A DNA stretch of 63,945 nt, the filler included, from Guillardia theta CCMP2712 (taxonomy: Eukaryota; Protista; Cryptophyta): assembly GCF_000315625.1 (NCBI RefSeq). It is 5 parts of 5 records of this genome, joined end to end, with 100 filler letters (N's around TTAATTAATTAA, not from the genome) between each part and the next. Parts side by side here need not be neighbours in the genome. Positions count along the whole stretch, not along the records: positions 19,518 to 37,497 come from NW_005434619.1; 4 more parts are not named here. One strand, 5' to 3'. A model generated the notes under the pieces. The model saw only the letters and a program-made list of their open reading frames with translations. It was not told where the DNA came from and ran no database searches. The position numbers and the translations under genes are program-made. Shown here piece after piece: positions 7,928 to 37,497 of the stretch. How positions within the stretch are numbered: position 1 is the first letter of the stretch; every line of letters begins with the position of its first letter.

Positions 7928-10798
7928 ACCTACTCTTTTCCTCCTCCTCCTCCCTGGGGGGGGGGGGGGGGGAGGAGGAGGAGGAGGAGCAGCAGCAGCA
8001 GGAGGAGGAGCAGGAGGAGGAGGAGCAGGAGGAGGAGCAGGAAGAGGGAGGGCGAGAGGTGGAGGAAGTTAGGAAGCTGCTTCGCGCCACCTGAGTTGCT
8101 CGATGGCTCCTCTCGCCTTCTCCTCGGAGCTTCTAACGTCAACTGCCACAGTAAGTGAGCGAGGAGGCGTCAGTCCCCTTTGCATCTCACGCTGAAGATC
8201 CTCGATCGTGCCCTTCCCGTCCTCCGAGCAGCAAGGATGAGCCGCAGCTCCTTGTTGCCCGGAACTCGCCACTGCATGATGGGAGGCTGGAAGTTCGGGA
8301 CCTCCTTGCAAAGAGCAAGCTGAGGGGCAGCAGGCTGCCTCTGAGTTGAAATTCCCGTTGCTGTTCCGGTTCTCAGTATCGTCTTGATGGAGACAGCATG
8401 GAAGGAATCTCATCTCTCAGAGCTCTATCATTAGTGTTGATAGGCTATCAAACGATAAATTCCTGTTGGATTTCTTGTCGCCTGTTACCCGAAGATTAGC
8501 ATAACAACCAAACAAGGCAAGACAAGCATCTTGATTCCCTTTCCCTTCCTCTTCCTCCCCATCCTTTCTCTCCCTTCCTCTTCCCCTTCCTTTCCTCACT
8601 ATCCCCTACACGTCCCTCCCCTCCCCTCCCCTGCCACGCCCTCAGTGCATTTGATCTTCTGCTTTTTCAAAAGTTTCGAAACTTTGGGAGTTTGAGACTT
8701 ACAGTTGCATCGAAACTTACAGGGACTACAAACTTTCTGAGAACTTTCGAAAGTTCCAGAATGGGCAGAACAATGGTTCAAACCAAAAAGGATCAAATAA
8801 ATCAAGCATGAACCGAATCAAACCTGAGGTCGTCCGAGTTGAGGAAAGGTTTTGTAAAGTCGGGGCAATAATAATACTAAGTCGGGGGCAATACTAAAAA
8901 TCAGTAAAATGGAGGAACAAGAAGAAGTCTCTACACACATCGTTTGAGTTCTGAGTGATCCGCAACACCCGGTTCCATTTCGTTGAAGGAAGGGGTGGAG
9001 TGGTGCCACCATTTGCTATGACGGGGTCCTATACTGCTACATCGGAATAGAACCTTTCTACAAGCGTCCTCCCTTAGGCCTAAAGAGAGGTAGAGGCCCA
9101 CTTCCCTAAACATTGAGGGTCCTAGGATTCTGATAGGTTGATAAGACCCCACTCTGAATTGTCCAAGGGACTCGTGGGCTGCGGCCTGCGCATGCTTGTA
9201 AGGCTGCTAAACGAGCTCTCCATGGGTGTGGCAGGCGTTTAGCATAACCCCTACCCCCCTCTTTCCCATAAAACAATAGCCAAAGAGGTGGGTGTGAAAG
9301 GAACTTCTCTCAACGCTGTCGTTGACGCGCCATCTTCAGCGGTTTTCAGGTACAACTAGAGCACCCCCACCCCCCAAGCTCTGATTCTGTAACCTCCGAT
9401 GTACCCCTACCAGGCAATCTTTGATGACCTCACGTCATCGCCCCACCCCTACACCCCCCTACCCCTCTCACCGGAATCGTTTTGTTCCATATTCCCCAAG
9501 TTCTGGCATGGAGCATCCCCACCCCTGTAAGTTTGTCCCCAACTTTTCACTACCGGTGGTCTTTGAATCAACACCACACAGGACCAGTTGTTTTCCCTGC
9601 AAAAGTCAGTGGAATGGCAAGATAACTGGTAGGGTAAACCAACCCCTGGGTACTCTTGAGAAGCCCACCACCTCCTGCAATCTAACCTCTTCCTTCCCCA
9701 AGTTCTATTTCTAGACCCCTGTTGTCTCGTACTACACCCCCTTGATAATACCAGCAAAGTACCCCTAATTTTGCCTGCCATTAAAGAACCTACCCCTCAT
9801 ATCATGACTTCTCTTCTTCCCCCGTTTCATTTCTCTTCCCCCAGTTCATGACCCCACCCCCGAAAAGTGGGATCGGACTGCCCACCCTGTTTCCTCACAC
9901 TACCCTACCTACTCCACTGGTCCATCTGAAAATCTCCTTGCCATGGATCCTTTGTTACACCACTTTGTGACACACTACCCTACCCCGTCGTTGGTGACCA
10001 CCCCAAGAAGAATGAACAGACCTACCCCGGTAAAAGCTCCTTGCATCGGCTACCCAAGTTTTTCCTGCATAAATACATACCCAGGGGGGTACATTTGAAC
10101 ATCTCAGGACATCCCACCCGTTGCAAACATGGTACCCACCTCCGCCATTTGATCAATAGAGCCACTACCCCACCTCATATAAGAATCCACCCCTACCCCC
10201 TCAACAAACATTCTCGTGAGTTACCACCCACCCCAGGAGGTGGGGTCATTCAGAGATTTCACCTCTTCCCTCCCCTTACAAGGCAGAACCCACCCCACTT
10301 GGTTCCTTATGGATGTTTTCATGAGAACCCTCTTCTATCACCACCCACCCCGAACATGGAGAATGACCAGAAATGGAGGGGTTCAATTCAATCATCACAG
10401 CAGTTCCCAGGACTTTCTAGCGCAGTACGATAGGTATCAATGATTTACCTATGAACACATTCGGTAAATCGAAGACCCTTGTTTAGTCTTCTTTGCTCTA
10501 CATTAGGAGTCCAATGGAACAGACACCCCCCACCCCTGCAAACAAACCCCACCTCGTAAATCTCCAAAAACTTGGATGACCCTACCCCTCCTGAAAAATA
10601 ATTTTCGCGAGTACCCACCCAGGGTTATGTGACATCTCCCCACATTGTTTTTTTATGACCTACTCCACTCCTGCTTCCCTTAAGCCATCCTCCCTCTCCC
10701 ACTCTCCTCCTCCTTCTCCTCCTCCACCTGCTCCTCCCCCCTCTTCCTCCTTGTTCTTCGTGAACACTCTACTCCCAAAAACTTAGCCTCATCCTCTG

Positions 10799-12031
10799 AT
10801 GGGTAAAGGCTGGACCACGCAATGCTCAGAAACAGACAAGAGAAGTAATTTACTCAACGCAGCCACCTTCCTGGTGGTTTTCGTCGTCCTGCTTCAGGAT
10901 GGCTCCGCCTTCCACATGGGAGCGGTTGGACCTTCCCTGGGACGATCAAGGATAACAACAAGCAACCTGGTTCGCCTGAGACACATGACGAGAGTTCCCC
11001 TGCGACGCCAGCCTCTATCTGAACCGGCGAGCTATGACAACCTGAAGAGCCTGTCGGGTTTGAAGAAGAGGACCGGGGTTGCTGTGAGGTTCAAGCAGTC
11101 TCTGGCGGATGCAGCAACTTTCAGCACAGACCAGCTGGATCTCTCCGCCTACATCAACAAGATCAGCAATGGCGTATCGGAGAAGATGATCGGAGGTACC
11201 CTCGCCATCGTCGCCTTGATCCAGCTGTCGAAAGGCCTCGTGCTCTTCAGCCCTCCAGGAACCAACCTGATGGCGCATGCTGTCGCTGGGGCACTTGGGG
11301 GGATTGTTGCTCTCTCAGTCGGCTACCCTTTGGAGGCTGTGGAGAGAGGACAGAAGAAGATGGGAGAGTTCGGCTCCATCTTCAACCGAATGCAGAATGT
11401 CTTCCGCAGCCGAGTCACGGACCTTTACAAGGGCTTCCGAAAGTCAATGGTGGTCACGGCGATCACGAGGGCGGTCAATGCTGGCACGTACGCATACTTG
11501 AAGGGGACTCTCTCCCTCTCCTCCATCTCCGGGGGGCTCGGGGTTGTAGCTGTGGCAGCGTTCGGGACAGGTATCATGTCGACCTTGATCTCGCTGTTGT
11601 TCGACCCAGCGAGCTCCGAGCGCAAGATGAACTTGGCTCACAAGCTCATGGATGCGGGGAAGCGATGCCTCTCGAACATCGTGGGGTTCGAAGTGTTCTT
11701 CCTCTCCTATACAGCCCTGTGCGTGATGAACCCTATCCTGAGCATCAGCCTGGGAGGAGCAGCGATCTCGGGCGCTCTGTGTGGGTCTGCTTCCTATGTT
11801 GCTAGCGCTTCCTTGGAGGGAGTCATGGACGGAAAGGGTGTTGTCCCGCACAATGGAGTGAGGAGACGCGGGGGAGTTGTGGATTCCATCAAGTTTGCGT
11901 TGAAGAGGACCGGTTCAGTCTTGCAGGAGACCATCTCGCACTGCAGGAGATCTGACGTTTGCTCGTTAGTGGCACTCTCGAATGCGGTATTGTTTGTAGT
12001 TTATCAGGCGGTTTACGAGATTTTAGTGTGA
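10799..12031 (+). CDS. Intronless divergent mitochondrial-carrier-family-like membrane protein with a signal peptide + GSA-F leader
   Basis: 410-aa ORF. Contains AGALGGIVALSVGYPLEAVER (Px[DE]xx[KR]-like) followed by LYKGF, plus further Gly/Ala-rich helices. The N-terminus LVVFVVLLQDGSA-F is followed by an R/S-rich stretch. Confidence 0.7.
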   Translation: MGKGWTTQCSETDKRSNLLNAATFLVVFVVLLQDGSAFHMGAVGPSLGRSRITTSNLVRLRHMTRVPLRRQPLSEPASYDNLKSLSGLKKRTGVAVRFKQSLADAATFSTDQLDLSAYINKISNGVSEKMIGGTLAIVALIQLSKGLVLFSPPGTNLMAHAVAGALGGIVALSVGYPLEAVERGQKKMGEFGSIFNRMQNVFRSRVTDLYKGFRKSMVVTAITRAVNAGTYAYLKGTLSLSSISGGLGVVAVAAFGTGIMSTLISLLFDPASSERKMNLAHKLMDAGKRCLSNIVGFEVFFLSYTALCVMNPILSISLGGAAISGALCGSASYVASASLEGVMDGKGVVPHNGVRRRGGVVDSIKFALKRTGSVLQETISHCRRSDVCSLVALSNAVLFVVYQAVYEILV

Positions 12032-19517: not shown

Positions 19518-19752
19518 AGATTGCAGCAACAGTCCCCAAAAGCTCTTTAACACGCTCTCCCCCATCCGTAACATGCCCCATAACAATCTCTAAACAAAAC
19601 TCCCGGATAATATCAAGGCAAATGCATATAACACTCTTATCTTCATCTGATAACCCTCTCATCTGTTTCTTCAAACGATTCAGCTCACTCTGCGCTTTCA
19701 ACACAAGAGAACTAGTATCCTCACGGTATCGGTTCTTAATCCAATCACTCAT
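19518..19752 (-). CDS. Hypothetical protein in the AT-rich island, 3' truncated
   Basis: ORF MSDWIKNRYRED... runs open into the linker. Confidence 0.5.
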
Positions 19753-19868
19753 AATTCCACTCTCTCACAAATACAACCTTTCCACACAATCAGTTTATTA
19801 ATATACCAAAAAGCAATTGATAAAAATCAAACTCCAAAAACACCAAAGCTAAAGTCATCACAAAAATT

Positions 19869-20582
19869 TTAATTCCGCCGAAAACAACACAGACCTTCAT
19901 ACGCACCTGCCCATTCCCCATAGAACTCAGGAACAAAACCAAGCGTCCGAAAAAGATTATTCAGAGTATGCTGCTCCCCATACTCAATGCCAATCAGCGA
20001 TGAATCCTTCTCAATCAGATCATTCACCCCAATCCGTTGCCATTCACCACGCTTCAGCAAAATAAGACGGTTCAAAAAAGTCCACCCATAACGCTGATTC
20101 ACAGTAATCTTCGTAATACCAAGAAATCCATTCAGTTGCAACTTCATCTCACCACCATCCATTATACTCCCTTCCAACACACTCTCGTCACGCTCCAACT
20201 CAACCAATCCAAACCATTGGCAAAGCTCCAAAAACATCCAAAAAGTACGGTTCTTGTTCTTCATACGTTGGCTCTTCAAATATCGCTCTCGAAGGAACCG
20301 CCGGCTCACTTCATCCATACCAAAAACCTTCAAACTCTGCACTTCATTGAAGTTCTCCAAAATGCTCCGATACGACTTCTTCCAAATAGTCTGCCCTGCT
20401 CGAGCTCGCACTTGTTTGCTCCCAACTCCCGAAATACAAACAAGACTCTCAATCACAATCTTATCAGACTCGGAAACCACACTTTCATTCACCACACCCA
20501 CACCAATCAAACTCTCCGCAAGCTCGCTCATCGCAATCCCACACAAAAAAACCCTTCCCACCTCGAGTCCTTTTATAAACAC
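19869..20582 (-). CDS. Hypothetical protein (up to 237 aa; probable start MSELAES)
   Basis: Long intronless ORF in AT-rich DNA with globular-looking composition. Confidence 0.65.
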   Translation of the reverse strand: MFIKGLEVGRVFLCGIAMSELAESLIGVGVVNESVVSESDKIVIESLVCISGVGSKQVRARAGQTIWKKSYRSILENFNEVQSLKVFGMDEVSRRFLRERYLKSQRMKNKNRTFWMFLELCQWFGLVELERDESVLEGSIMDGGEMKLQLNGFLGITKITVNQRYGWTFLNRLILLKRGEWQRIGVNDLIEKDSSLIGIEYGEQHTLNNLFRTLGFVPEFYGEWAGAYEGLCCFRRN

Positions 20583-21139
20583 AAGCTAGGAAAGTCGTTA
20601 TATGTCCGTTATGAATAACGAACGTTACGGAAGTTACAAAACCGTTAAAAATCAAATACACGTTATTGGTGACAAAATGATTTTTGTAAAGTATATAAAG
20701 CAAACACTGTACACACATCAATTTTTCAATGACAACATGAAAAAGAAGAAAAACACACCGATTTTAGTCCATAGCAATGGCAAACAGCTGATGGCTAATA
20801 TCACCAACGCTATCATTAAAAACGAAAACAAACTCTGCAATTTAGATCATATTTTTCAAAAACAATACAATAAATCAAACATAAAATAATCTAATAGAAT
20901 AAATCTAAACATAAACAAAAATAAGTTGTTATTGTAATATATAATAAACTTGACATAAACTACATATTCTTATTGTAATATACAACAAAACTAACATAAA
21001 ATACATGATTTCCCGATATCACACATAAGCAACAAACAAATCTGACAGTCCATCCCGAAAAACACACATAAAACAACAACATTCTCCGATTCGTACTCCA
21101 ATACATATAAATTATTAACCACACAACACTACCATCATC

Positions 21140-21751
21140 ATGCCCACATCACAATCTGAACAAAATACACAAGCAAAAACCAACAAATCAAAATACAATA
21201 CTATAATACTATACATACTATTCTTTCTATTCTGGCTAACAGCAATCACTGCTTGGTACTACAAACCAGCACCCATAAATAACATAAACAAAAGAAGACA
21301 GGATTCACAGGATAAACTCAATATGCCATTCCTATTACATTGGTTCCTCTCAAACATTATCATCGCAATATTCTTCCTCGCTCTGCCTTTAATTCTATCT
21401 CTCTATTCTTCCAAAATAATATCCTTATCAAAATTCCAACTTCTCCTCCCAATAACTGTAACATCATTGGTTGCAATAATGGCCTGGTTGCTCTTCGATC
21501 CTTTTACAGATAAAAAATCTTCACAACCATATACACAAAACGAACTACTGATTGTCTCAATCGGTGGTATTTTCATTATCGCTTGTTTCATTTTCATCCT
21601 ATCATGCATATTACTCTGTACTACACAACAACACTCTGACATACAACAAACTCAAATACAAACAGCCACATCCGAATCTAAATACATCCGTTATCAACCT
21701 TTAGTAACATTCCCTCTTGATAAATACCCATACATCCATGCATTTCAATAA
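21140..21751 (+). CDS. Hypothetical membrane protein, 203 aa, about 4 transmembrane helices
   Basis: Intronless ORF with four hydrophobic stretches and a good ATG context. Confidence 0.7.
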   Translation: MPTSQSEQNTQAKTNKSKYNTIILYILFFLFWLTAITAWYYKPAPINNINKRRQDSQDKLNMPFLLHWFLSNIIIAIFFLALPLILSLYSSKIISLSKFQLLLPITVTSLVAIMAWLLFDPFTDKKSSQPYTQNELLIVSIGGIFIIACFIFILSCILLCTTQQHSDIQQTQIQTATSESKYIRYQPLVTFPLDKYPYIHAFQ

Positions 21752-22396
21752 AAAATATTCAATTGCTGCACTTTTTACTGTTCTCCTTTTTCAAAAAATC
21801 TATTCAAAAATCTGTAACATTTGCTGTTTTCAAGTGCTCAATTTCAACCATTCTCAACGCCTCATTTTTTCCTCTTAAGTTGAAATTTTCATTATCAGTA
21901 AACTTCCAAAAATTCACTTAAAGACCACCACGAGAACGTCGAAAAGGACGAATTAACTCCAATTTTAATCACATTTCCGGAATGCGTCAAAACTAGCGTC
22001 AAAAGACCTACCAGGGGGGGGGGTTTTTTACATATATATAATTTTTTGTATACCCCCTTCCCCGGCGTTAGGGGAGACACGACCGGTCCTGTCGGTGGGG
22101 GCCGAGCGGACGTGACTCATCGGGGTCACTGCTGGCAGAAATGCACTGAGGCGGGTCTGCTAAGAGTTCTGCCCTCAGGCCACTGAGCTTTCCGCCTATG
22201 TCAATCTGCTGCCCCCAAGGTACGGTTTTGACGGAGACTCTGAATTTCATTGTCCTCGTACTGATTTTTTACTTACTAACTTTGAGTAAAGGACTGAGCC
22301 AGTGGTGCCCGTCTCGGCAGATGATCAAACACAGACCGTACGCAAAACGCGGATTTCACCCGTTGAACCAACATATGCTTTACTAGTGTACAAACA

Positions 22397-25300
22397 TCAT
22401 GTCTCTTTCACAAAACCAAGCTTCTTCGCCTTCTCAAACTCTTGAAGAAGCTCATTCGCTGTCTGCTGTGCCTGCGTCATGCCCGACCCTCCCTGCCAGC
22501 ACCGTCAGGCACCCTCCCCCTCCTCCTCCCGAGTCCCCCTCCCGCCTCCTCCTCTCGCTTCTCTCTCCCCTCTCCTACCTCTCCTTTCTCGTAGCTCTTG
22601 GCCAAGTTGATGTCCCTGTCGATCTTGTTGCGGAACTCGATGTGCTGCAGTCACAGCAAGACAGCAGCAGCGTCAGCAGGCGGGCACAGGCCTCGCACAA
22701 GAGACTCACATGGAGCTCGGAGTTTCTCCTTCTGTTGTGCATCTTGGCTGACTCCATCTTAAGCTCGTCTGCCATGCGCTGATACCGATCCCTTCTGCTC
22801 TCGAGCTTCGGCTCTGACGCGAGATGATTGTCAGTACACTTATGCCAACGAAAAAACTTGCTTAGCATGGATAAAACGGAAAGGGACAGGCAGGCAAGCC
22901 AACAGACACCCAGAAGAAAGCAACACAATCAATCTGGATAAGTCTGTCCAATCAAATACCATCATTTCCTCCTGAGGCGAAATGTAAAAAACTGCCTCTC
23001 TCTTCTCTCGCAGCGTTCATCCCCTCCTCTTCCACCTCACGTCTCTGACTCTTGTCCACCTCCTACCAACCAACTAGCCTCACTGACCTGTGGGTGGAAC
23101 AGGTTTGAAATCCGCAGATGGCGGCAGCGGGTATTCTTTCGGCCCCAATGGATTTGAAAGGGGAAACGTGATCGACCTGCCGAACAAGTCAATGCGTTCT
23201 TCTTCTACGCGCAATTTCCTACGGATCGCGACCAGCTTCAACCGATTCAGAAATATCTTCCATCTGCTCAGATGCAGAGTACCGTCTTGTGAAACCATCA
23301 TCGATCATCCCCTTCAGCTGATCTTGTAGCGCCCACCCGTCCATCAGCGTCGTCGAGAAAGTTCGCAGGCTCGACTGCAGACTCTCCGTCACAGCCTCAC
23401 TCACACTCCCGCGCCTCACCGTCTCTATCATGCTTCTCATCTTTGCTTTCTTTTCACGTTGTAATGTAGGGAACATCCGGCAGACCTTGCAGCCCTCCAC
23501 GCAGTCAAGCTCGTACAGCGCCCTCGCAAGGTGCTCGAACTCCTCCTGCCCTCGCCGTCACTTCCTCCTCTCCCTCCTCCGCTCGTCTCTCTGGTCTCTC
23601 ACCAGGTCGATCTGCTCGTCCCCGTCCACGTCCGTCTGCTCGATGAAGCTGTCCAGTGTCTCATCCGAGATCTCCTTCCCCATCTTGCGGAAAGCATCCT
23701 GGATCTCGTTCCTGCTCCCCGTCAGCCCCTCGCGCCCCGCTGCGTGTGCTACTCTACCGGTCGATCTTGCCGCTCTTGTCCGCGTCCATCACGTCATAGA
23801 TCTCTCTGAGCTTGGCAGAGAACTGCAACACCCCAGGTCAGGGAGGAAGGAGGTAGGAGCGAGGGCGCAGACAAGGAGGGAGGAGAGGGACCGGGAGAGC
23901 AAGAGGTAAGGAGGGAGGGAAAGAAGGTAGTAGGGGATCAGTCAATGTCAATACCTCCATCCCGCTCAACCCGCTCAGGGAGCCGAAGAGGGTGGCGTTG
24001 GTCGCTTTCAAGGAGGGCACGCGAGTCAGCAGGGACCCAACTTGACTCAGTACGTCCTTGATCCTCGAGCTGGTTGGAGAATCTACAGCAACCACCTTCT
24101 CATCTACAACGTGTTCCGATCTGCCAGTACTGCCCCCATGTGAGACTGTCGACGTCGCTTCCGCCTCCTTCGGCCTGTGATCAAGCATCGTGTGTTCCAA
24201 CTGCTCCACGAGCTGCTTCAGCATCACCCCAGCTCGCTTCAGATGGCTCTGCTTCAGCTGCGAGCACGTGCACGCCCCGCAAGCGATCAGGTCGTGCGGT
24301 CGGGGCCTGTGCTCTAGGATCTCCTGCGACCCGAAGTGATCCCCTCGGCTGTGCATGGAGAGCTTGACGTTGTTCTTCCGCTTCTCCACCCGCCCGCGGA
24401 GGATGAAGATGATGGACTCCGTGAGGCTGCCGCTCTTGGAGATTCTGTTGCCGTCGCTGAAGGTCACGATCTCCATGAAGGGCTCGATCGTCTTGAAGTC
24501 GAAGTCTGCGTCCTGCGCTTTGATGTAGATCGCTGCGAGGTTGCACACTGGCTCTATGACTTCTTTCATCAGCTGAGCGTAGTTGAGCCTTCGCTTCTCC
24601 TCCGCAGCCTTGTCGTCGTCCACGTCCTTCTCCGGTGACCGCTTGCATACCGGACAGGTGGCCGGGCAGCGGTACTTGTTCACCTTGCAAGCGATGTGAC
24701 AAAACTCCTCCTGCAACACACACCTCTCAGTCGTCCCTCTGCCTTCCTCCAGGCTCCCTCCTCCCCACCATGTCCAGCTCCCCGTTCCCGTCCGAGTCGC
24801 AGCTCGCTATCCACTTGTCCAGGCTCTCGCTCGACATGGCATGCCCCATCCGAGCAAACGCGCTATGCAGCTCCGACCTACGCCAGTCACTCCCTCCCTC
24901 TCACCGGCAGGTCGGATGGTACCGAGAGAGCGAGTTGGACCCGTCGACGTCGATGGACTTGAACAAGTCTTGCACCTTCTGCGCGAACTGCAACCCAAGG
25001 GGCTCAGCGTCTGCCCCTGAGAGAAGAGCCGCCCACCTTCTCTGGCGACAGGCCGCTCAGCCTTCCGAAGAAAACTGAGCTTGCTTGCTCCAGGACGCTG
25101 AGGGCAGGAAAGGAATGAGCGAGCACAGACAGCATCGCAGAGGGCTTATAGAGAGAGGCTGTGAACAAGGAGAGAGAGAGACTGTAAAGGAGAGAGGGAG
25201 GGAGCAGATTCGGGAGTACTATGACCTACCTGCTTCCTGTCGAGAGCGTCCGCGATATCGAGATCTCTTGGCTCGAAATTGTGTGCTCTAATCGTTTCAC

Positions 25301-26141
25301 GCGATTCTGCAAAGAATCATCGTTTTCGTCTTCGCCGAGAAATTTTGAGTTCCGACGAGCTAAGGCCAAAGTGTTTCGCCTTCGTGGGTCGTGAGAAAAT
25401 CCTCCAGGACTAGAGGAAACTCTTGAGATAGGAGTGAGACCATTCGCAAGAGTCCCAGGGCTGGAGGTCGACGATGAGGGAGCCAGCGGGCAGCTACACT
25501 CATGCTCTGCTACCTGCCTTACCGTCCCCGTGAAACCGCAATCGTACTTGCAAACCACCGACGGACTTCGTACGCTCGTGTCGGATGTTCCCGGCCTGCT
25601 GCTCGGAGACGAGAACATCTTCTTACATTGTCGACAGTCGGGCTTGCAAGGGATCTTGAGCTTGACCCGCACCATGTGCTCAAACTCCCCCTGCCACCCA
25701 TGCAGTCCCATCAGCTTCTCCCCCCTCTCGCAGCGTCCATGGCAAGCACCGAGTCGATGTGATCGTCCCGGTTGGTGTCGTAGATGTCCATCAACGCCTC
25801 GATCTCCTCCGTGCTCACCCGCTTCCCCATGAACGCAAACGCCCTCGCCAGGTCATTCCTGGATCTCGTCAGCTCGCTGCGTCAGACAGTAGCGGAGTGG
25901 CGATACCTCGTGAGGAAGCCGCCTTGATCGGAGTCGAAGCGCTTGAAGGTGAAGGCGATCTTGGATGACAACTGGGGGAGGGAGCGCGAGGAGTCAAGAG
26001 CGAGGAGGACAGCGAGCGGGAGGACAAGGAGAGGAGGAGGGGGTCAGTCACGGTGAAGAGTGGACGGGGAGGAGAGGAAGAGGAGACGTACCTCGTCTGT
26101 CGGGACGGTAGCGAAATATTTGATGACTGTTTGCTCTGCAT
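22397..26141 (-). CDS. Multi-EF-hand protein: three EF-hand pairs each followed by H-x9-C-x3-C-x2-C, a zinc-finger-like segment and a cyclic-nucleotide-binding domain
   Basis: Spliced EF loops: DSDQGGFLTRND, DTNRDDHIDSGE, DVDGSNSLSRSE, DSDGNGELDMEE, DADKSGKIDRNE, DVDGDEQIDLEE. cNMP signature FILRGRVE...GDHFGSQEIL...PRPHDLIA. Last exon ends KLGFVKET* at 22397. Confidence 0.85.
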
Positions 26142-28037
26142 CTTCCAAGATTCTGCAGAGGTTTTGTTGGTTGTAGATCAATTTAATTGCGACCATTGGT
26201 GACTCACTGCTTGGATCCAGACAACGTACGCGTTACGACTGCTAAGTCACTCGAAAGGCCAGCTTGGAGCTTCTTAAGCCTTTCCAAGTTACTCTGTCCA
26301 AGTGAAGGATTTCAGAACGTAAGAAGCTTTGTTGATATAATGCTGGTACCGCTTGCATTTGTGGAATTCAGACAAGAGTAGATACCTTGAAATCCCAGAT
26401 TTACAAAGGTCTGGAAAAGCAGTAATGTGCCAAAAGAAGATTATCACCAGGCTCGGGTTAGAACTCATCTCTTTCAAGTCTAGAACTATCACCACTCTCT
26501 CGATTCATCACATTTCTTGATGCCTTCAAACCTCTCCAAGTTCACACACTGATAATTCACAAGTCCCTTTGAGGCTCCTTCAACGCCACTCTCCTGCCAT
26601 CCTCCCGGCGCTCCCCAGCCCCCATCCCTGCTTTGCTTCCTACCATGCTCCCCTCCACCCCAACCTCATCATCCTCCCCTTCTCCTCTCTTCTTCCTCGC
26701 TGTTTGCTCTATGGCCCCGCCCCCAGCGCCGCATTCTGCTTCACTCAAAACTTGATTGCTGACCCCACCCCTGTACACCCCACACCCAACATCCCACTAC
26801 CTCTCCCAGTACCTACCCCCATATAACCCATCGATTACCCCCTACTTCATAGGGGTAGTTGCCTACTGTTTGCACTCAGTGAGTACAAGTCCGGAGTCCG
26901 GACCCCACCCTCCTGTACGACCGATGTGCCTCCCAATGACCCACACCCCACCTCGAAAAACTATCCATCTGGTCTCTACATTTCCATTAGGAAAGGAGGG
27001 GTGGAAAGGCACCAAGACACCCTGCAACCTACCACCTACCCCCACCGGCCCAATCGCTACGTCCAGTCCATCGGGACCGGTTCAGAGGTTGACTACCCCC
27101 CTTTTGTCGGTCAAGTGGACTGGTAGCCAGATATTCACATTACAAAATGATGACCCCTACCCATCCTTTGAGCCAGAACCACATGGGAAAGTCAAGGGGG
27201 GTCATGCTACCTGCCGGCGGTCACAACTCTCTTTCAGAAGGCTCTCGATAATGCATGTCATCGTTTGGAATTGAACAGCGGAGATTAGAGGCAAAACAAG
27301 ATGAAGCTTTCCGATCTGACACAAAAAAGGTAGGGGTGATATACACCTTGACCAGCCGCCGAGTTATCAGCGACTTGATCCAACTAGTATATATACCCTT
27401 CTGCAAATTTCTGTCACGTTCTTGCCACCATTTATGGACAGAATTATGTAGTAAAGATGTACCTCCTCCTCTGCTGTGATTTTAGGGGTTGGGGTCCGTG
27501 CCATAGTGGGTAGGGGTACCAACTGTTCTGGCAACGTGGGTAGTTGACAATAGAATTCTGTTGGAAATGATGGGTAGGGTACTATTTGAAGGGGTAGTTG
27601 AGATCATATTTGGATTCGTTTGTGCACACCTGCCCAACACCCCTACCCCCTCGCTTCCGTTTCACAGACCGCTAGAAAATGACTGCAAGGTGGGTACCCC
27701 CTCAGACAAGGGAGGGGGTGGGGGATAAAGATAAAAATGACTTTTATGTGTCTTGTCCCATCCCTTTTGCATTCCTCCAGTCCTCCTCTCCTCCTCTGTC
27801 AAGCTCTATCTGTATCGAGACCCCCCTCTCACTCCCCCTCACCTTCACACAGCCTATCTGTACATCATCTGTCCTCCTATCTTCCGCTTTCCCCCTCGCT
27901 TCTGTTATCGAGCCATTCGTTCGGGGCTGCTGGGATTCGAAAGGACATCGTTGTTTGCGCCAAGAGTGTTGTTTGATAGCAAGATGCCAACCAACTAGCA
28001 GCTGGATAGTCAGTCAAGACTAAGGTACACAATAGAT

Positions 28038-29292
28038 ATGCCACGATTTGAGGTGGTGCTTCAGGCAGCATGCATTCCTGTCATCAAGGTTTTGTTGATA
28101 GCATTTGTCGGAGCTTTCTGTGCCAGGAAAAACGGCAAAATTCTCAAGGAGAGTTCAATCATGGGAATATCGAGATTGATTTACAACATCTTCCTTCCTG
28201 CCTTCATCTTCACCAAGCTTACAAAAACCGTCGACCTTCAAATCATCTCCCAGTGGTGGCCTATCCCTGTTTTTGTCGGCTTGAACTTTGCTGCCGGGCT
28301 GCTCTGTGGCATTATTCTTCTCAAGTTGTTTCCACAGAAATCGGAGAAGTTTAAAGGCTTAGTTCTTGCCTCATGCGCACTAGGGAACGTCGGCCAGATC
28401 CCCCTCGCACTGGTCCCTTCCGCCTGCAACAGCCAGATCCCCAAGTACCAGAACCACGGAGCGAACTGTCTGGCAGACGCACAGGGGATGGTGGCGTTCG
28501 GGCTATGGGTTGGGACTATCATGATCTGGACTGTAGGCAAATACTTGATGACCGAATCATTCCTATCGCAGAAACAACCCAAGCAGTACGTGGAGTTCGA
28601 TCCAGAGAAAGGTGGCAGCGGCGTAGCAGACCTGGAAGTCTCGCTTCAAGCGCAAACTTGTCTCCCGACACGGAGCACGAGAATGCGCAAGAGCTTGAGG
28701 CGAGTCTCTCTTGCCAAGGAGTTTCTCGCAAGGATACCCAACCCTCCCTTCGTTGCCACCGTTCTCGGACTTCTGTGTGGTGGCGTCGGATTCTTGAAGT
28801 ACGGGCTCAGCAACCCCAACTCTGTGCTCGCTCCGGCGTTCGACGTCCTGGAGCAGCTGGGAAGCACCTACATCCCGCTCATGATCCTCCTGCTGGGAGC
28901 CAACATGAACGCAGGGGCAGGTGAGAAGGAGGAGGACATCGAGATGCTGCACCCGTTCATGGTGGCTTCAATCATCGCCGTGAGGTTGCTGCTGCTTCCT
29001 CTGGTGGGGGTGGGGCTGGTGTACAGCTTCAAGCAGACTGTTGCCCCCTCCTTAGATCCTCTCATCGAATTTGTTATTCTTTTGCAATTCTCTGTTCCAA
29101 CTGCTGCAAACCTGAGCACCCTTGCCATCATGACGGGGACTTGGCCTGCAAGCGTATCGCGGCTAGCACTGTGAGTGTTGTGCCTGCGTGTTTGCATGAT
29201 CACTAACATCTCATCTTTACAGGAGCCAGTATCTGGTGGCAGTACCTTGCTTGACTATTGCTATCATGGCGTACATCACCTACACCATCTGA
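28038..29292 (+). CDS. Auxin efflux carrier (AEC) family / PIN-LIKES (PILS)-type transporter
   Basis: IYNIFLPAFIF, GNVGQIPLALV, PLMILLLGANM, RLLLLPLVG and DPLIEFVILLQFSVPTAANL motifs. Intron 29171-29222, then SQYLVAVPCLT...*. Confidence 0.9.
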
Positions 29293-30077
29293 TTCTTTCT
29301 TGTAGACTAGGAGTATTATCTTGTGAAATGCTATCACTGTCAAAGACTCGGAATCGATACACCTCTCCCCAAACTCAGCTTCTCCTACTATCTTTCATGT
29401 ACAACTGTTTCCATCGCGGAGCATGAGCGACGGAGCTCGTCTGTTCTTCTCTCCTCTCCTCTGCTCTCTCCTGCTCTCGCGTTGCTCCTTTCGCTCGCAT
29501 GTGCTGCCCCTGCTTTGTTTCCCTTGCTTTTCGAGAACGGACGGTGAACGTGGGTGGGTCCATCTAGGAACCTTCATTCTAAACCCCCTTAGCTCAAATA
29601 TTTATTGGATGAGACAATAGTGAATTAAGGTATAGTCTGCACATGACCTTGGGAAGGGCAGGGGTAGTAGTCCAATAGGGTGGGGGGTGGAGGAGGACAG
29701 TGGCAGGGGCTGAGCGCCTGCGAGGGAGAGCGACGACGAGACGACGAGCAGGAGGAGGAGGAGGAGCTCTAGGAAGACAGCTCTTGTTGCTAGCAGGTGA
29801 TGATACCGATCTCACCTGCACGTGTGTTGAGATCCCCGGAAGAGACGTTGGAGGAGGAGAGTGTTGTGTGCGAAGATCTGCAGAGATCGGAGGGTGAGTC
29901 AAGATGAGGAAGAACACCAAGGATTCGATAGACAGGGCAGGAGGAGAGGCACTTTTCTTCACCTCATCTCAGTGCCTACACCTGCTCTTTGTGTCTGTCA
30001 GAACGCTGATGCTCTCCTTTGTTCTCACAGCATTGTTTTCCGGAGCTCCTTGCGCCTTTGCCAGTTCTCCGGACCAG

Positions 30078-31698
30078 ATGTCGTCCGAGGTGTTTGTCAC
30101 TCACAACCGACCGCCATGCCCTGAAGTCTTGACATCTTTCCGTGAAGATTCTTTCTACCATCGTCGTCCCTGCCTACAAGGAGAAGCCGAACATTCGGCC
30201 ATTGACACAGCGGCTATTGGATGTGAGCCGGCTGGGAGGGAGGGGAGGCATGTTGGATGACTTGGTTACAAGGCCCTTCGCTCTCATGGGATGGACAAGA
30301 GCACAGAAATTCTCATCGTCGATGACAACTCTCAGGATGGTAGCGAGGAGGCGGTGAACGAGCTTCAGAAGGAGGTGAAGACTTCCCCACCACCTCCTCC
30401 TCCCCCTCCCCCTCCCCCTCTTTCTCCTGCTCCCTCACCCGGGAGCATGCAGGGCTTCCCGATCAGAATCTTTGTCCGCAAGACCGAGCGAGGGCTCTCG
30501 AGTGCGGTCCTTCGAGGCTTCCAGGAAGCCAAGGGGGAGAAACTGGTGGGCATCAGCCGAGGGCCCTCCGACCCCTCCGCTGACACCCTGCACTTCAGAT
30601 ATGTATGGACGGAGATCTTCAACACCCGCCAGAGAGGGTTCCCCAGCTCCTCAAGGCACCGACGTCACCCTTCCTGTCTCTCTGCGCCCTAACACATCTG
30701 ACAGGCTCTCGACAAAGCTGACTTCGTGCTCGGGACTCGGTGAGAGACTTGTGTCCCGATCGACCTCTGTCGTGATTCTGATTATGTTGCACAGCTACGG
30801 GGACGGCTTTGCCGTTGATCCCTCGTGGCCATGGTAGGAGAGGACGGGCCATGGCGGCTCTTGCTGACGCGACGCAGGTACAGGGTTGTCATTTCTAAGG
30901 GCGCGAGGCTTCTTGCTAGACCCCTTACTCCCCTGAGGTGAGAAGCAAGTCACTCCTGCTCTTTTCCTTGCTCCTCCTCTATCTGTAGCTCGATCTCCTA
31001 AACTTTCGGTGATTGATTTTCCTCGCAGCGACCCGATGAGTGGATTCTTTGGAATAACAAAAACAGCCTTGAAGGTGCGACATCATGTCTTTTCTCGTTC
31101 TTCTCCATTCCTGTTTTTCCTTCCCCCCCTCCCTCCCTCTTTTCCTTTCCCTCAATGTGCTTGCCGTTGCCGCTTGCTCTATAGTCCTCGAACTCTCTCT
31201 CGTAACTTCTCAGTCTTTCCTCTCCTCTCCTCATTGCCTCCTTTTGTCTCCAGCGTGGTGCTGGGAAGATTAATCCTGTCGGATTCAAGATCGCGCTCGA
31301 GCTCTACGTCAAGGTGAGAATCAGCTTCTGCTGTATCCCCCGACAGCAGCTGACGGTTATCAGTGCGGGTCCAGCAGCCATGAGGAGGTGAGCATCTTCT
31401 TCGGCAAGCGGGAGGCAGGCACCTCGAAGCTCACGGGCAAGGTTGGTCATGAAAGCCAGCAGGTCGAAGACAGCGAGGGCTGAGCGTGGCTGCAGGTCAT
31501 GTTGTACTACTTGGTGCATCTCTTCCAGTTGTACAGGTCAAGTTCGAGAGCATGCTCGTCTCTGGTCTGATGGCAGATGATGGCAGGTACCAGTACCCGA
31601 TGCTCATCCCAGCTCTGCTGGTTCTCGTCCTCGCCTTCTTGTGGCTTCTTGTCTCCACGTTGTTGGGATGGAATTCAAACAAGGCGAAGTTGTCATGA
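30078..31698 (+). CDS. DPM1: Dolichol-phosphate mannosyltransferase (GT2) with a C-terminal transmembrane helix
   Basis: IVVPAYKE, ILIVDDNSQDGS, ERGLSSAV, MDGDLQHPPE, DPMSGFFG and GFKIALEL across about 11 short introns. Hydrophobic tail LIPALLVLVLAFLWLLV. Confidence 0.88.
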
Positions 31699-31849
31699 AT
31701 AAAACAAAACTGATGACAAACTATGCAAACACCTCAAACCGTATCAAAAGTGAAATCTCAACAGACGCGTTGCTCTTGTCCCATCGCACACTCATAGCGG
31801 GATATGAGCTGATACACAGTTGAGAACCTTCCCTGCCTGCCCCGAAGCC

Positions 31850-33326
31850 TCCTCGTCCCCTTGCTGGCACCTTGACCGTCAGCCCGCAGGAGAGAAGAGA
31901 AGCAAAGAGACCTCTAGGAACGAGCGCAACATGCCGATCAACTTCTCGTCCTTGGCGATGGCTTCATGCAGTTGTCTGCCGTGAAAGTCAGCTCCCCGCA
32001 GCATTGCTCTCAGTCAAACACGATTTGCTGCCCATGACAATGACAAGGAAGAAGAAGGGAAGAGGAAAGATACGGCACAGGTAAGGGGGCGACGAGCAAC
32101 GAGCGGGGAGATGTAAGGGAGAGAACCTGTTTCCTGATACGATGCCCCCTAGCACTCTGCATGCTTGCGTGATACACTTCTGATCTTTGTCCTCGTACGC
32201 CTGTTGCAGGACTTCCCTGCGCGCAACTTGAATCTGAAGTCGATGATAACTCCCTCAACAGACCTAATCGCTTCGAGGACCCCCGGGACGTTGGCAAGAG
32301 CAACCTTGTTCTCATTGTTCCTGAAAGCAATCTTGAACGTGTCACATACACCTCTTGCGTTCTGGGTCAGAGAGATCACTTGAGATGCAGCTCGACACGC
32401 CTCAAACCTGCAAATGTGAATCACAACACAGCCAGCATGTTGACGGGAACTTCTCACCGAGCTTGCGCCGAACCTCTTCTCATCACATTCACCAAGTCTT
32501 CAAAGATCCCTTCCACCTGATTCATACTCCTTGTCACCACCAGACATGGTCAATCGAATCTTCGCCCGCACCTTTCCGATGACGACTCTGTTGTCTATAC
32601 AACTCCTTGAGTGCATTACGGCCACCCTCCTGGCATGCTTGTCTGCTTTCGCTCCCTCCTGTCACCTGGTGAGGCAAACAGTCTAGACAACCTGCCGTGC
32701 TACCTCAGTTGAGTCCTCCATCAGCATGAATCCGTCTCCCATCATGTACCTCCTGCCGTCAACATGTACAGGCCCATTTTGCTCTGCCTCGTTCTCGCCC
32801 TGCCAACCACAATCCTCATTCCCCACCCTCGCTCTCGGCAACTCCAACGAACTACCGTTGATGAAGATTCTTTCCCCAGGAAGACAGCCTTGTCATAATC
32901 CGTCATGGCGTTGTGGTTATCGATGGAGACGCCAGAGGTGAAGGAAGTCATGTGGTACAGACTCTCCGCCGCCATGCACATCTGGGAGCAGGACGTCACA
33001 GTACGAGAGCAAGGTCTTCAGCTCACGTCTTCGTCGTTGTCGCTCTTCAACTTCTCCGTCGCCTCCTTGATCATCCGCTGCTGCTCCTCTGGCTCCAGAT
33101 CTCCCTGCACATAGCGCATGTGGCGAGGGATGGGCATGTTCCAAGTGACTGCAGGGCAACACGTGTCACTGAGGCGTGAGGGAGAACGATCGGCATAATC
33201 AGCATTTGCGATCTAGTGCAGAAGCAAACAACAGGATCGAGACGCCTCCAGCATGTTGATCTGCTTCCTGAGATCTCATACAATGGAGGGATCTACACGG
33301 TTGCCGCGTGGTCTCTCATCCTTCAT
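31850..33326 (-). CDS. Hypothetical multi-exon protein, possibly ARM-like helical; boundaries approximate
   Basis: Coding-like exons flanked by GT/AG, e.g. DLEPEEQQRMIKEATEKLKSDNDED and IAFRNNENKVALANVPGVLEAI. Confidence 0.45.
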
Positions 33327-33949
33327 TATGAGCCTTGACCGAGTCCTCCTCCCCTTACCCCCCCCCCCCCCCTCTCCTCCTCCTCCTTGTCCTCGTCCTC
33401 TTCGTCCTCCTCATTCTCATTCTCATCCTCATCCTCCTCCTCTCCGTCGTCGTCGTCATCATCATCACCATCCTCATCCTTATCCTCATCATCCCTGCGT
33501 CCTCGCTCTCCCGCTCTCCACCTGACCCTCCCACCCCCCCTCCCAGGTCTCCCGCCATTTGCAGAAGTATCCGGGTGCAACTCTTGTTGGAATTCGACAA
33601 TGTTTTCGAATGGCAATATTTTGGGTCAAATTTGATTAATATTATCATTTCTAGTAAACTTTCCGAACAATCCCATCCGAGAAGTAAACTGAAATTCCCT
33701 AATTGTAACCGGCGCAATCCCAGCGTAACCGCCGGTACCGGCTTTCAACGGGCCCGTCGGATTTGACAAGCCGCACTCCGTACCGTCAGGCATGCGAGGG
33801 AGGGAGGAAGGAGCGAAGGAGCGAGAAAGAGAGGAGGAGGAGAGGAGGAGAAAGAGACTCCTCAGGGACTGACTAGTAGGAGGAGTGAATCGCTGGGGCA
33901 GCTTCAGAAGCATCACAGTGGTCCCCTGGTTGACTTCAGGCAGGGAGGG

Positions 33950-35789
33950 ATGAACGAGCATGCGCAGGAGCAGGGCTCAGACGAGGTGCAGTACTTCCTC
34001 GAGGAGATGGAGAGCATGCATCAGCACCTGGCGACATGGCACCATCGCAACGTGGTCGGCATCGACAATGCGGTCAGGAGCCTGCAGGTGCAGCTGAGCG
34101 AGGAGACGGCGAGGAGGAGAGAGGTAGAGACTCTGCTGAGAGCTGAGCAGCGAAGATGCGAGAAGCTGCGGCTGAAGAACAGCATCTATGAGCTGGACAT
34201 CAGCAGGCTGGAGAGTTTGCTGTGGAATGAGAGAGAAAACAACCTTAGTGCTATGGAGATGTTCCGACGATTCAACGACGAGCTTGCAAGTGTGGAAAGT
34301 CTCGCGCTCAACGTGGAGAAGGAGCTGCAGGCAGGGCTGCTCCTGGCGTCTTCCTGCCCTGCCGGTAGAGGAACTTTGGATGCAGTAGAGCCACCAACTG
34401 CCGCTACCGGTGCTGTTCGACCGCCAGAGTGGTCGTCGGGAGGGCTGGGCGGGGTGGTCGTCGGGAGTACTGAGTGTCTCCTAGCTCCCCCATCCCCTCC
34501 TCCGGGGATGGAGCATGTAGATGTGGAAAAGAGAGGACGAGGAAGCGAGACGGAGCCGAAGGAAAGAGGGACGTTGAAGGGAGAGGGAGGCGTCAATAGG
34601 CAAGGAGCTACTGGAGGGGCGACAGGCCCAGCTGAGCGCGAAGTCCAAGAAGATGACCGTAGCTCATCGACGAGTGCAACGCCCTCGCTGAAAGGAATCT
34701 ACAAGAGCGACGGCAGCAGCTCACGGGAGTCACCGTCTGCGAGGCAGCATGAGAAGAGAGTGACGCTGGGAGGGGCTGACGTGCGAGTCTTTCACGATCT
34801 GAACCATTCCTCCTCTACCCCAGCGATCCATGGCACAGGTCCTTTCCCGCTCCTCCCGCTCCTCCCCCTGCTCCCCATACTCCCTTGCTCCCCTTGCTCC
34901 TCCTGCTCCTGCACCTCTGACTTGCTCATGCTTAGCAGCTCAGTCCCCGGAGAAGCAGAGATTCATCAAGATGAGTGACCTCAGGGTGGCGTCGGAGGAG
35001 ACGAGGAGCGATCGGTCAGATCTCTGCCGCCTCCTGCGTCAGTCGTGACCTGCTGTTTGCAGCACGTTCATGCTGAACGCCGTCAAGAGGAACGGGCTCG
35101 CGCTGCAGTACGCGAGCAGCAGGCTGCAGGGCGACAGGTGGGGCTCCCGTGCTTGTGCTCCTTGTGACGTGATGGACAAGGGACGTGGTGCTAGCTGCCG
35201 TCTCCATGAACGGCCTCGCCCTCCAGTACGCGAGCGACGAGCTGAGAAACGACAGGTGAGAAGAGGGAGCGCGTGCTTGTCGTGACGTAGCGGCAGAGAC
35301 GTTGTCATGTCCGCCGTGAAGTCTTGGGGATATGCGTTGGAGTACGCGAGCGATGAGTTGAGGTGAGAAAATCCCTGCCCCTCCTGTCTTTCCCTGTCCA
35401 GCACCTCCCTTCCCCTCTTCCCTCCCTTATCGCTGCCTGAAAAAACTCTCCTATCCTCCTCCTCCCCTTCCTTCTGCTCCCTCCCCGCCCATTTCTCCCC
35501 CACCCTCTTCTCCTTCCACATGATCACCACCAGTGTTGCTGTCATCGTTCATGTCGTGACATGGGAAACTTTCATAACTTGCTGCGACCAGAGGAGATCG
35601 CGACGTTGTCTCAGCTGCTGTCCAGCAGAACTCCGCTGCTTTCTTATTCGCATGCGCGTCCATCAGGTGGGAGGGGAGGAGCGGGAAAGAGGATGACGCT
35701 GGCCTGGCAGGAACGACCAAGAGTTCATACATTCCCTTGTGGAGCGCGACAGCCACCTCCTCGGCCTCGTCGACTCCTCGCTCTTGTGA
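33950..35789 (+). CDS. Coiled-coil protein with C-terminal DUF4116-type repeats
   Basis: N-terminal heptads. Repeats AVKRNGLALQYASSRLQGD, AVSMNGLALQYASDELRND and AVKSWGYALEYASDELR each sit on their own exon. Confidence 0.8.
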
Positions 35790-36129
35790 GCATGCTTGTT
35801 CTTCCAGGTTCCAAGGAAGAGATCGAAAAGTGAGAGAGGAGGGAGCAGGGAAGGGGAAGGGGGAGGAGGGAGGAGGGAGGAGAGACTGCAAGGGGATGAC
35901 GGGAGGGAGCTGGAGGGGGAGGAGAAGAAGGAGAGATATAAAAGACATGGAAGAAAGAGCCAACGTGAAAGTAGTGAGGTATCAATGAGAAACAAAGTCA
36001 ATGAATAGGAACAAGATAAGTATGAAATGAATGAAGTGAAAGACAAACGAGCACATCATGGATGTTCGTCGTATCAAACGTGTATGTCATCCATGAATAT
36101 CAACATTGGGCTTGTCCTGCTCCGTTACA

Positions 36130-37250
36130 AGATACCACAGCAGTCTTCGAACCATCCTGCAAGAAACTTCAGCTGACTTGTGGGCTGACGGATGAGCGAC
36201 CGGCGGACTGACGGACAGACTTGTACATCATCTTGGTCTGTAGACGAAGTGAGAAGGGCAGAAAAGCGAGGTAGTACATGTCTCAAGGGGAGGGAAGGTG
36301 AGGTCAGATGCGATGCGATGCGTGGAGAGGAGAGGAGAGGAGAGGAGAGGAGAGGAGAGGAGAGGAGAGGAGAGGAGAGGAGAGGACTAGACGTATACCT
36401 GGAGGGATAGTTTGTTCGACTGCAGGACAAGATCTTCAAGTTTTTGTCCCCTGGCAGCGCAAGGCACGGAAACGAAACAAGGAGGAGGAGGAGGAGGAGG
36501 AGGAGGAGCAAGACAGTCAAACATCATTCGCCTTACTCGCAATCTTTACCTCTCTAGCAGTGCGTCAATAGATTTCTGCAAGATCTGAAAGAGATTGTCA
36601 TGAATTTTTCTCTCTTTCCAAACCTCCATCATCTTCCCCCACCTCCCGGCCCCCGCTACTCCCCCACGTTCCCTTGCTGCCTCCCCTCCCTTGCTTCCCG
36701 ACTCCTCCTTTCATCGTCTATCTCCAGTCGCTCTTCCCTCTCCCTCAGCATCCACCACAGCTTACGTGCTTCGTTTCATCTATCTCTCGCTTTAGTCTTT
36801 CAATCTTGTCTGTTGCCGCTGGGTCCTGTTACAGAAAGAAAATGATATTATCATCGTCATCCTCCTCCTCATCATCATCATCATCGTCATCTTCTTCTCC
36901 ATCATCATCATCCTCTCCATCATCATCATCGTCATCATGATCGTCATCATCAACCTGGTACTTCGATAGCATGTCTTCCAATTCCTGCATCGACCAGTCA
37001 GCGCCGATAATCAAACTTTCCCTCCTCAACACAGCGACTTCATTCCTCACCGGAAATTCCATGCAACCATCTCTTGACGACTGAGAAATGCTGTCTTCTG
37101 TGTACTGAGACTGAAACTCCTCCTGTATCTCCATTAGCCACCTGCCAACGGAGCAGCAGCAGCGATCGCGGACCAGGATCGACTCAACTAGATTGATGGC
37201 AACCCGCTGGGGATATTCCTAGACAACACTTGCTTCACTCGCACATCAGC
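36130..37250 (-). CDS. Hypothetical multi-exon protein; boundaries approximate
   Basis: Exon ...WSMQELEDMLSKYQ|GT, followed by DPAATDKIERLKREIDETK after a microsatellite intron. Confidence 0.35.
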
Positions 37251-37497
37251 TCCACCACCATCCTCTCACAGAGTCTGTTATCAGCGTGCTTGCCAGCCCA
37301 CTGTGCTGGCTGTAGACGTAACCTGCCCGTTGAATCATCGCCCCCCCCCCCCTTTTACCTCCCCTCCCCTTACTCACAGTAACAAACTTTGCCATGTATG
37401 GTCGGGGTCCAACCCCTGGGGGCCATCAGAACCAGTCACTGACCCATCGCAGACAGGACATCATCGGTCACTGGTGGAAGTCTCCTGCCCCCCGTCT

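Follow-up and report, generated by a model that had tools for sequence, protein, structure and literature searches.

In a 63,945-nucleotide window (filler included) of DNA from the cryptophyte Guillardia theta CCMP2712, the piece derived from NW_005434619.1 (positions 19,518–37,497; window coordinates are used throughout) contains a spliced gene on the minus strand, whose predicted protein carries three copies of a module in which an EF-hand pair runs directly into a histidine and three cysteines of fixed spacing, EFxH-x9-C-x3-C-x2-C (hereafter the His-Cys3 motif). Judged by its sequence, this module is a distinct, so far unnamed, subfamily of the EF-hand superfamily that is marked by a fixed N-terminal lead-in on one side and the His-Cys3 tail on the other. 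The His and the three Cys are proposed to make up a Cys3His site, of which a single structural or regulatory Zn2+ would be the most likely ligand, with a probability that we put at about one half.

A triplicated EF-hand module with a His-Cys3 tail

Each of the three copies has the same layout, i.e., an N-terminal helix, an FGxLSG motif, two EF-hands and the sequence EFxH-x9-C-x3-C-x2-C. The initial annotation of this DNA had described, after manual splicing, three EF-hand pairs that each run into H-x9-C-x3-C-x2-C, and all three were recovered at the positions where it had placed them: the back-translated EFxH-x9-C-x3-C-x2-C pattern matches the window exactly three times and matches none of 100 dinucleotide-preserving shuffles. 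The extent that it gave to the module was too short, however: the EF-hand pair and the motif stand as described, but the N-terminal helix and the FGxLSG motif also belong to the repeating unit.

In an exon-by-exon alignment the three copies are only 24–33% identical to each other (typically ~27%). Against this background of divergence, the Glu, the Phe, the His and the three Cys encoded by the third exon of each module are invariant, as had been claimed of the His and the Cys, and so are the calcium-ligand and core positions of both EF-hands. Since both sets of residues are invariant among copies that have otherwise drifted so far apart, the His and the three Cys can be regarded as conserved as strongly as the calcium ligands themselves. 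The loops are of the 12-residue kind with ligands at the positions expected of an EF-hand pair (PF13499 and related families), and five of the six are canonical, the exception being loop 1 of module 1, where Gly occupies position 5 and Asp position 12. Single window exons score 18–22 bits against the EF-hand models of Pfam, below the cut-off of 30, because the introns split the domain. The His is placed three residues past the calcium-binding Glu-12, on the exit helix of the second EF-hand, and the final Cys pair reads CPVC, CQPC or CKTC, which as sequences are typical of zinc knuckles.

A family of metagenomic relatives

A word search with exon E8 (the exon that encodes the second motif and a cyclic-nucleotide-binding, or cNMP, domain; Table 1) found a single relative, P0001 (94% identical), which is encoded on L001, an ENA metagenome contig of 2 kb. 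A full HMMER search with the same exon against 1.84 billion proteins yielded no further orthologue; the 89 other proteins recovered share only the cNMP domain and C-x3-C-x2-C occurs in none of them. Related loci were also sought in the JGI metagenomes through the cNMP exon and none was found. Relatives of the module itself came from a scan of metagenome contigs for the DNA pattern of EEFxH-x9-C-x3-C-x2-C, which returned 81 loci, roughly as many as chance would produce, along with four matches on viral contigs. In two of the 81 (L009 and L078) an EF-hand loop lies in frame immediately before the pattern, and both also carry WFGSLSG, the motif found ahead of window modules 2 and 3; the other 79 were set aside as chance matches (radical-SAM-like, thioredoxin-like with WCPPC, or belonging to a bacterial Cys-rich family). 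Protein searches from these two loci retrieved P0091–P0101 and P0126–P0130, with lengths of 176–780 residues. The family as a whole amounts to ~17 proteins from JGI, ENA and Logan assemblies, one of which is also in NCBI, and every member that was named by its source is annotated as a 'hypothetical protein'. The relatives are encoded in long intron-less open reading frames (ORFs), in which Pfam recognizes EF-hands only (E 1e-10 to 1e-13). One member, P0118, lies on a 57 kb JGI contig (L083; Ga0620987_04627, around 10001–11326) that also carries Copia-type reverse transcriptase and integrase genes; the presence of these Copia-type genes confirms that the intron-less relatives sit in a eukaryotic nuclear context.

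The alignment of the family is invariant at W-F-G-x-L-S-G-P-A-L, at the EF-hand positions and at H111, M112, C121, C125, C128 and N135. The window exons align with it in register, and across the three window copies and 14 aligned metagenomic relatives neither the His nor any of the three Cys varies. The family is defined by FGxLSG, an EF-hand pair and EFxH-x9-C-x3-C-x2-C, and all three window modules belong to it, each by matches in three successive exons. A profile built solely from the relatives (P0091–P0101 and L078) was run on every stop-to-stop fragment of the piece and exceeded 5 bits only on nine exons, those of the three modules, with matches at the colinear profile positions 43–72, 69–106 and 106–133. 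Because a profile that had seen only the family strikes these nine exons in colinear order, the repeat modules are tied to the family and their exon borders are confirmed. As the aligned proteins stand, the layout is common to a domain family, in which it is usually present once per protein, and is not private to the window gene.

Two degenerate relatives bear on whether the four residues form a set. P0132 keeps its EF-hands while its His is replaced by Glu and both Cys 2 and Cys 3 are absent; P0130 likewise keeps the EF-hands, with Thr in place of the His and Cys 3 deleted. Of all family sequences from outside the window in which this stretch is kept, these two alone are without the His and these two alone are without Cys 3, a coincidence with odds of ~1 in 100–170 when shared ancestry is ignored. 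The joint loss of His and Cys supports the view that they act as one unit. Taken with the invariance in the three copies and 14 relatives, it bears out the proposal of the initial annotation that the His and three Cys constitute a single unit built on the exit helix of an EF-hand. P0132 further bears a C-terminal cNMP-binding domain (E 2.2e-12), and because it combines both elements, the pairing of the EF-hand module with a cNMP domain is seen to recur within the family.

Another short conserved motif, AAS[TK]LQ, occurs in most members (among P0091–P0101, P0126–P0128 and P0132), the degenerate P0132 included, at 24–30 residues past the last Cys in those that were checked, and is repeated three times in P0128 (residues 120–230); it has no clear counterpart in the window protein. 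By eye it is IQ-like, but it was rejected as an IQ motif (PF00612) for there is no Pfam match even at E up to 10.

The gene and its exons

The exon model was derived from a minus-strand reading of 23300–26200 combined with three-frame inspection, and the searches were run exon by exon. The locus is confirmed as a spliced minus-strand gene of ~13 exons and 785 codons, coding for a protein of ~780 residues. Its 12 introns are all of the GT-AG type and 45–132 nt long, with the frame unbroken across the 785 codons when phases are checked exon by exon. The exon sizes themselves repeat with the modules: 65 nt three times, 109 nt three times and 61 nt twice, the last being the exon ahead of the other two in modules 1 and 2.

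The contig L001 offers a natural comparison for this model. It is 94.9% identical to positions 25161–23298, with exons that are 95.6–100% identical and free of indels, as against introns that have indels in four of the seven compared and are only 87–93% identical in five of the seven. The codon differences in the EF-hand and motif exons are almost all synonymous, with the amino-acid changes concentrated in the linkers. DNA of this locus is also present in sequencing runs of organisms as well as in freshwater and lake metagenomes. Altogether, the manual splicing of the initial annotation is upheld by the GT-AG introns with their continuous frames, the recurring exon sizes, the indel-free exons in comparison with L001 and the colinear profile matches.

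The gene and its first module reach farther upstream than the end given to them earlier, at least as far as 26291, with a possible start at the ATG at 26468. From the LQAGL of exon E1a there are 27 residues to [WY]F[GA], as there are in the family, and the phase and residue position of the E1a intron equal those of intron 4 in module 2.

Table 1. Exons of the gene, its three His-Cys3 motifs and the C2HC finger, in window coordinates
Feature	Position	Strand	Support
E0, tentative first exon with ATG	26468-26386	-	open frame from ATG; GT donor at 26385, phase 2, fits the acceptor before 26291; no homology support
E1a, N-terminal helix of module 1 (LERLKKLQAGL)	26291-26208	-	weak profile match (4.7 bits) to the N-helix of the family
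E1b, 61 nt, end of N-helix and YFA (module 1 counterpart of FGxLSG)	26152-26092	-	same size as E5; AG acceptor, GTACGT donor
E2, 65 nt, first EF-hand of module 1	25971-25907	-	profile positions 43-72, 12.9 bits
E3, 109 nt, second EF-hand loop of module 1	25858-25750	-	profile positions 70-106, 13.3 bits
E4, exit helix and His-Cys3 motif 1, TRAF/Sina-like finger, Ser/Thr-rich linker, N-helix of module 2	25690-25230	-	profile positions 108-131, 19.0 bits, E 3.6e-5
E5, 61 nt, FFGRLSGLS of module 2	25097-25037	-	agrees with the WFGSLSG motif of the family
E6, 65 nt, first EF-hand of module 2	24987-24923	-	100% identical in L001
E7, 109 nt, second EF-hand loop of module 2	24877-24769	-	profile 15.3 bits
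E8, exit helix and His-Cys3 motif 2, cNMP domain (~24467-24234), linker, N-helix and FGSLSGLS of module 3	24710-23955	-	PF00027, E 1.3e-8
E9, 65 nt, first EF-hand of module 3	23822-23758	-	profile 11.4 bits
E10, 109 nt, second EF-hand loop of module 3	23711-23603	-	profile 17.5 bits
E11, exit helix and His-Cys3 motif 3, C-terminal tail, stop codon (23219-23221)	23545-23219	-	profile 9.8 bits
His-Cys3 motif 1	25625-25687	-	back-translated pattern
His-Cys3 motif 2	24645-24707	-	back-translated pattern
His-Cys3 motif 3	23480-23542	-	back-translated pattern
C2HC finger (CKYDC), C-x3-C-x11-H-x3-C	25490-25552	-	TRAF/Sina-like spacing; Sina_ZnF below cut-off

Predicted structure and comparison with known EF-hand systems

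AlphaFold gave a weak model for a 173-residue family segment (mean predicted local distance difference test score, pLDDT, 61.7) and a better one for a 120-residue construct (mean pLDDT 81.6; predicted template modelling score 0.77), the latter built with a 22-row alignment that included the window exons as separate fragment rows. In the 120-residue model the exit helix spans residues 80–91 with His85 at its middle, and residues 92–110, which hold the Cys, are predicted as an ordered loop with pLDDT of 74–80. Fold searches with Foldseek and VIA recovered EF-hand folds only—calmodulin lobes, calcyphosine, S100 proteins and calredoxin—and the His-Cys3 tail in none of these. Searches of the ESM Atlas by features and by shape led only to generic EF-hand clusters. 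In a sequence search of the PDB with the family profile the matches end near profile position 114–120, and the tail on its own retrieved nothing meaningful. Accordingly, the earlier remark that no named domain with this layout is known holds to the extent that no Pfam family or PDB chain spans the tail; the layout itself is shared with the ~17 relatives.

The best fold and profile matches to the EF-hand pair are calcyphosine (Z 13.0) and the calmodulin lobes (root-mean-square deviation, rmsd, 1.4–2.9 over ~70 residues). These proteins end at or soon past the exit helix, and are without both the FGxLSG lead-in and the His-Cys3 tail. In the comparison of the profile with the PDB, the His111 of the family aligns with residue 144 of the 149-residue calmodulin chain, i.e., Gln143 in mature numbering. 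In calmodulin, Gln143 points outward from the last helix and not into the target cleft.

In the way that it is proposed to work, the module would be closest to the zinc-binding S100 proteins. The zinc sites of the latter, some of which include Cys and some of which do not, engage the C-terminal helix IV, and zinc binding alters the conformation and calcium behavior of these proteins (PMC2686732). The likeness lies in both being small EF-hand pairs with an additional Zn2+ site (as in S100 A2, A3, A7, A12 and B), that of the window being a predicted one. The structures of S100A8 and S100A9 with calcium and zinc are among the fold matches that reach into the tail, with high rmsd. However, the S100 sites are formed at the dimer interface and have no H-x9-C-x3-C-x2-C, and their sequence kinship to the module is only through the EF-hand. 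Membership in the S100 family proper was rejected: both loops of the module are canonical 12-residue ones, in contrast to the 14-residue pseudo EF-hand of S100 proteins, and the rmsd to the latter is 5.7–7.8 Å.

A parallel may also be drawn with calredoxin of Chlamydomonas (5e37), an algal protein in which EF-hands are fused to a Cys-based module and calcium is thereby linked to thiol chemistry. There, the Cys module is an entire thioredoxin domain with a two-Cys C-x2-C active site, whereas in the window module it is an 8-residue loop on the exit helix. EF-hand pairs that run straight into His/Cys zinc fingers are known in diacylglycerol kinase alpha and RasGRP, in which the finger is of the C1 type. 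The C1 finger is a domain in its own right, with ~50 residues, two bound zinc ions and a ligand pattern that begins H-x12-C-x2-C, whereas the window module has fewer ligands, the first of which is on the EF-hand helix itself.

Other domains of the predicted protein

As the initial annotation had it, a cNMP-binding domain is present between the second and third modules, with PF00027 matched at 35.1 bits, where the cut-off is 27.5 (E 1.3e-8). Its matches in the PDB are regulatory domains of PKG and PKA, the best being the apicomplexan cGMP-dependent protein kinase (E 2e-14 to 2e-13). While the window domain resembles those of the apicomplexan PKG in sequence, the window protein has no kinase domain and its phosphate-binding cassette is altered: in the alignment it reads FGSQEIL...PRPH as against FGERALL...PRTA in PKG. 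The cassette retains the phosphate-binding Arg, but the ribose-binding Glu is replaced by Ser and the Arg is followed by Pro-His in place of Thr/Ser-Ala. As the cassette is partly degenerate, being without the usual Glu and Ser/Thr-Ala, cyclic-nucleotide binding by this domain appears doubtful.

The separate CKYDC finger that was reported after the first repeat is also present. Its C2HC spacing fits the TRAF/Sina type, with Sina_ZnF reaching 18.5 bits, below its cut-off of 32, and no match to zf-TRAF. Pfam found no catalytic domain in any of the exons. Thus, with regard to the protein having been seen as an integrator of Ca2+, metal and cyclic nucleotides with no catalytic domain, the last part is sustained while the cyclic-nucleotide part is weakened by the FGS...PRPH cassette.

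The proposed metal site and its alternatives

In the mechanism that we favor, the His and the three Cys would bind one Zn2+ in a Cys3His arrangement, both the metal and its identity being inferred. The final C-x2-C would form a zinc knuckle folded back against the outer side of the exit helix, where calmodulin has Gln143, and the hydrophobic target cleft would thus stay free. The ion would pin the C-terminal loop to this helix, three residues past the bidentate Glu. Because the exit helix is an element that moves upon calcium binding, the Ca2+ response could be set or modulated from this site, either by fixing the helix or by altering its movement through the zinc or redox state. Each module would then sense Ca2+ with an output that requires the Cys3His cap to be intact, and the window protein as a whole is probably a Ca2+-dependent adaptor or scaffold with multiple sensors, the adaptor role and the coupling to Ca2+ being themselves part of the proposal.

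A number of observations weigh against this picture. The C-x3-C-x2-C spacing is best known as the three-Cys ligand set of a [4Fe-4S] cluster and not of zinc. The His precedes the first Cys by 10 residues, such that the loop must fold back for all four ligands to meet. In the marine relatives another Cys (in the sequence ECG) and an Asn are invariant too, and because both are absent from the window copies, the ligand set may differ between lineages. To these may be added the partly degenerate cNMP cassette discussed above and the scarcity of RNA reads: over 22200–26600, an RNA-seq run from 2026 and three further runs that may be RNA contributed seven reads, with no junction spanned by any of them.

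The first of these observations leads to an alternative in which the site holds an iron-sulfur cluster, either a 3Cys-1His [2Fe-2S] of the mitoNEET kind or a [4Fe-4S], or consists of redox-switch thiols, in place of a structural zinc, making the protein a Ca2+/redox integrator with a logic akin to that of calredoxin. The ligation of iron-sulfur clusters by three Cys and one His is established chemistry, C-x3-C-x2-C is the classic spacing of three cluster-ligating Cys, several of the chance pattern matches are radical-SAM-like, and a green-algal EF-hand protein fused to a redox domain is among the fold matches (5e37, Z 9.4). Nevertheless, we consider it rather unlikely: there is neither a radical-SAM barrel nor another cluster-binding fold near the motif, with Pfam seeing EF-hands only; the C-P-x-C and C-x-P-C pairs resemble zinc knuckles; and the motif is on a small, solvent-exposed loop. 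Membership in two known cluster-binding groups was rejected. A radical SAM enzyme would account for the Cys spacing, but there is no Radical_SAM match in Pfam and no room for the barrel, the motif following directly upon the EF-hand helix. In the CDGSH domain of mitoNEET (C-x-C-x2-[ST]-x3-P-x-C-D-G-[SAT]-H) the ligand order and spacing are unlike those seen here, where the His comes first, and Pfam again returns no match. Less probable still is that the Cys cluster binds no metal and instead serves as an S-acylated membrane tether or a protein-binding surface, with the His being retained for packing or for tuning of Ca2+ binding. Some palmitoylated Cys clusters are preceded by basic residues, as is the first Cys in most members of the family (KKPC, KKAC), and this reading also draws on the metal being inferred. 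Acylation sites, however, tolerate variable spacing, whereas here it is strictly fixed across copies of ~27% identity; the Cys loop is predicted to be ordered; and the loss of His and Cys together fits a coordinated ligand set better. A wrong gene model or a pseudogene, such that the motifs are never joined to EF-hands in an actual protein, might be argued from the lack of a spliced read among the seven and from the full-length protein of this genome not being found in protein databases. This is highly improbable, given the frames that remain continuous over 12 GT-AG introns with recurring exon sizes, the mostly synonymous substitutions in the modules and intron-only indels in comparison with L001, and the intron-less relatives that encode the whole unit within one ORF.

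Surroundings of the gene

Upstream of the gene, the region 26560–27300 is of low complexity and C-rich on the plus strand, with no convincing coding frame seen. It is followed on the plus strand by an intact ORF of 378 residues (28038–29174) for a membrane transport protein (PF03547, E 6e-45), whose nearest ESM Atlas clusters are plant proteins like the PIN-LIKES auxin carriers, a faint pointer to a freshwater member of the green lineage, and by an exon-like ORF (30291–30692) that starts with a glycosyltransferase family 2 motif (dolichol-phosphate mannosyltransferase-like) and continues into a proline run. On the other side, 3' of the stop codon, 22400–22840 of the minus strand has three short open stretches with GT-AG-like borders, which encode charged, coiled-coil-like peptides and end in a stop near 22400; these might be either a separate small gene or further 3' exons. 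The beginning of the piece, 19518–21800, differs in composition from the rest: it is AT-rich (GC content 0.32–0.42 versus ~0.55 elsewhere) with a strong GC skew of -0.4 to -0.5, its long ORFs match nothing in Pfam, and a 41-nt tandem repeat is present at 20929–21006.

Significance

EF-hand sensors have been much studied and yet the His-Cys3 extension has neither a family name nor a solved structure. With the present comparisons, domain boundaries are now defined in ~17 'hypothetical' proteins. The family is small, its module of ~120 residues is easy to express and nature has provided variants that have lost the ligands, all of which make the hypothesis directly testable. Tentatively, and going well beyond the assignment of zinc, one might see here an unrecognized composite Ca2+/Zn2+ (or Ca2+/redox) domain of protists, possibly of the green lineage, in which occupancy or oxidation of the Cys3His site on the exit helix gates the Ca2+-induced opening of the EF-hand lobe; three such gates alongside a cyclic-nucleotide-type domain could allow a single protein to compute on several messengers without any enzyme domain. 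If the module proves to bind zinc or to sense redox state, Ca2+ signaling would be linked to metal or redox status by a compact, genetically encodable unit, which would be a monomeric counterpart of the interface zinc sites of the S100 proteins.

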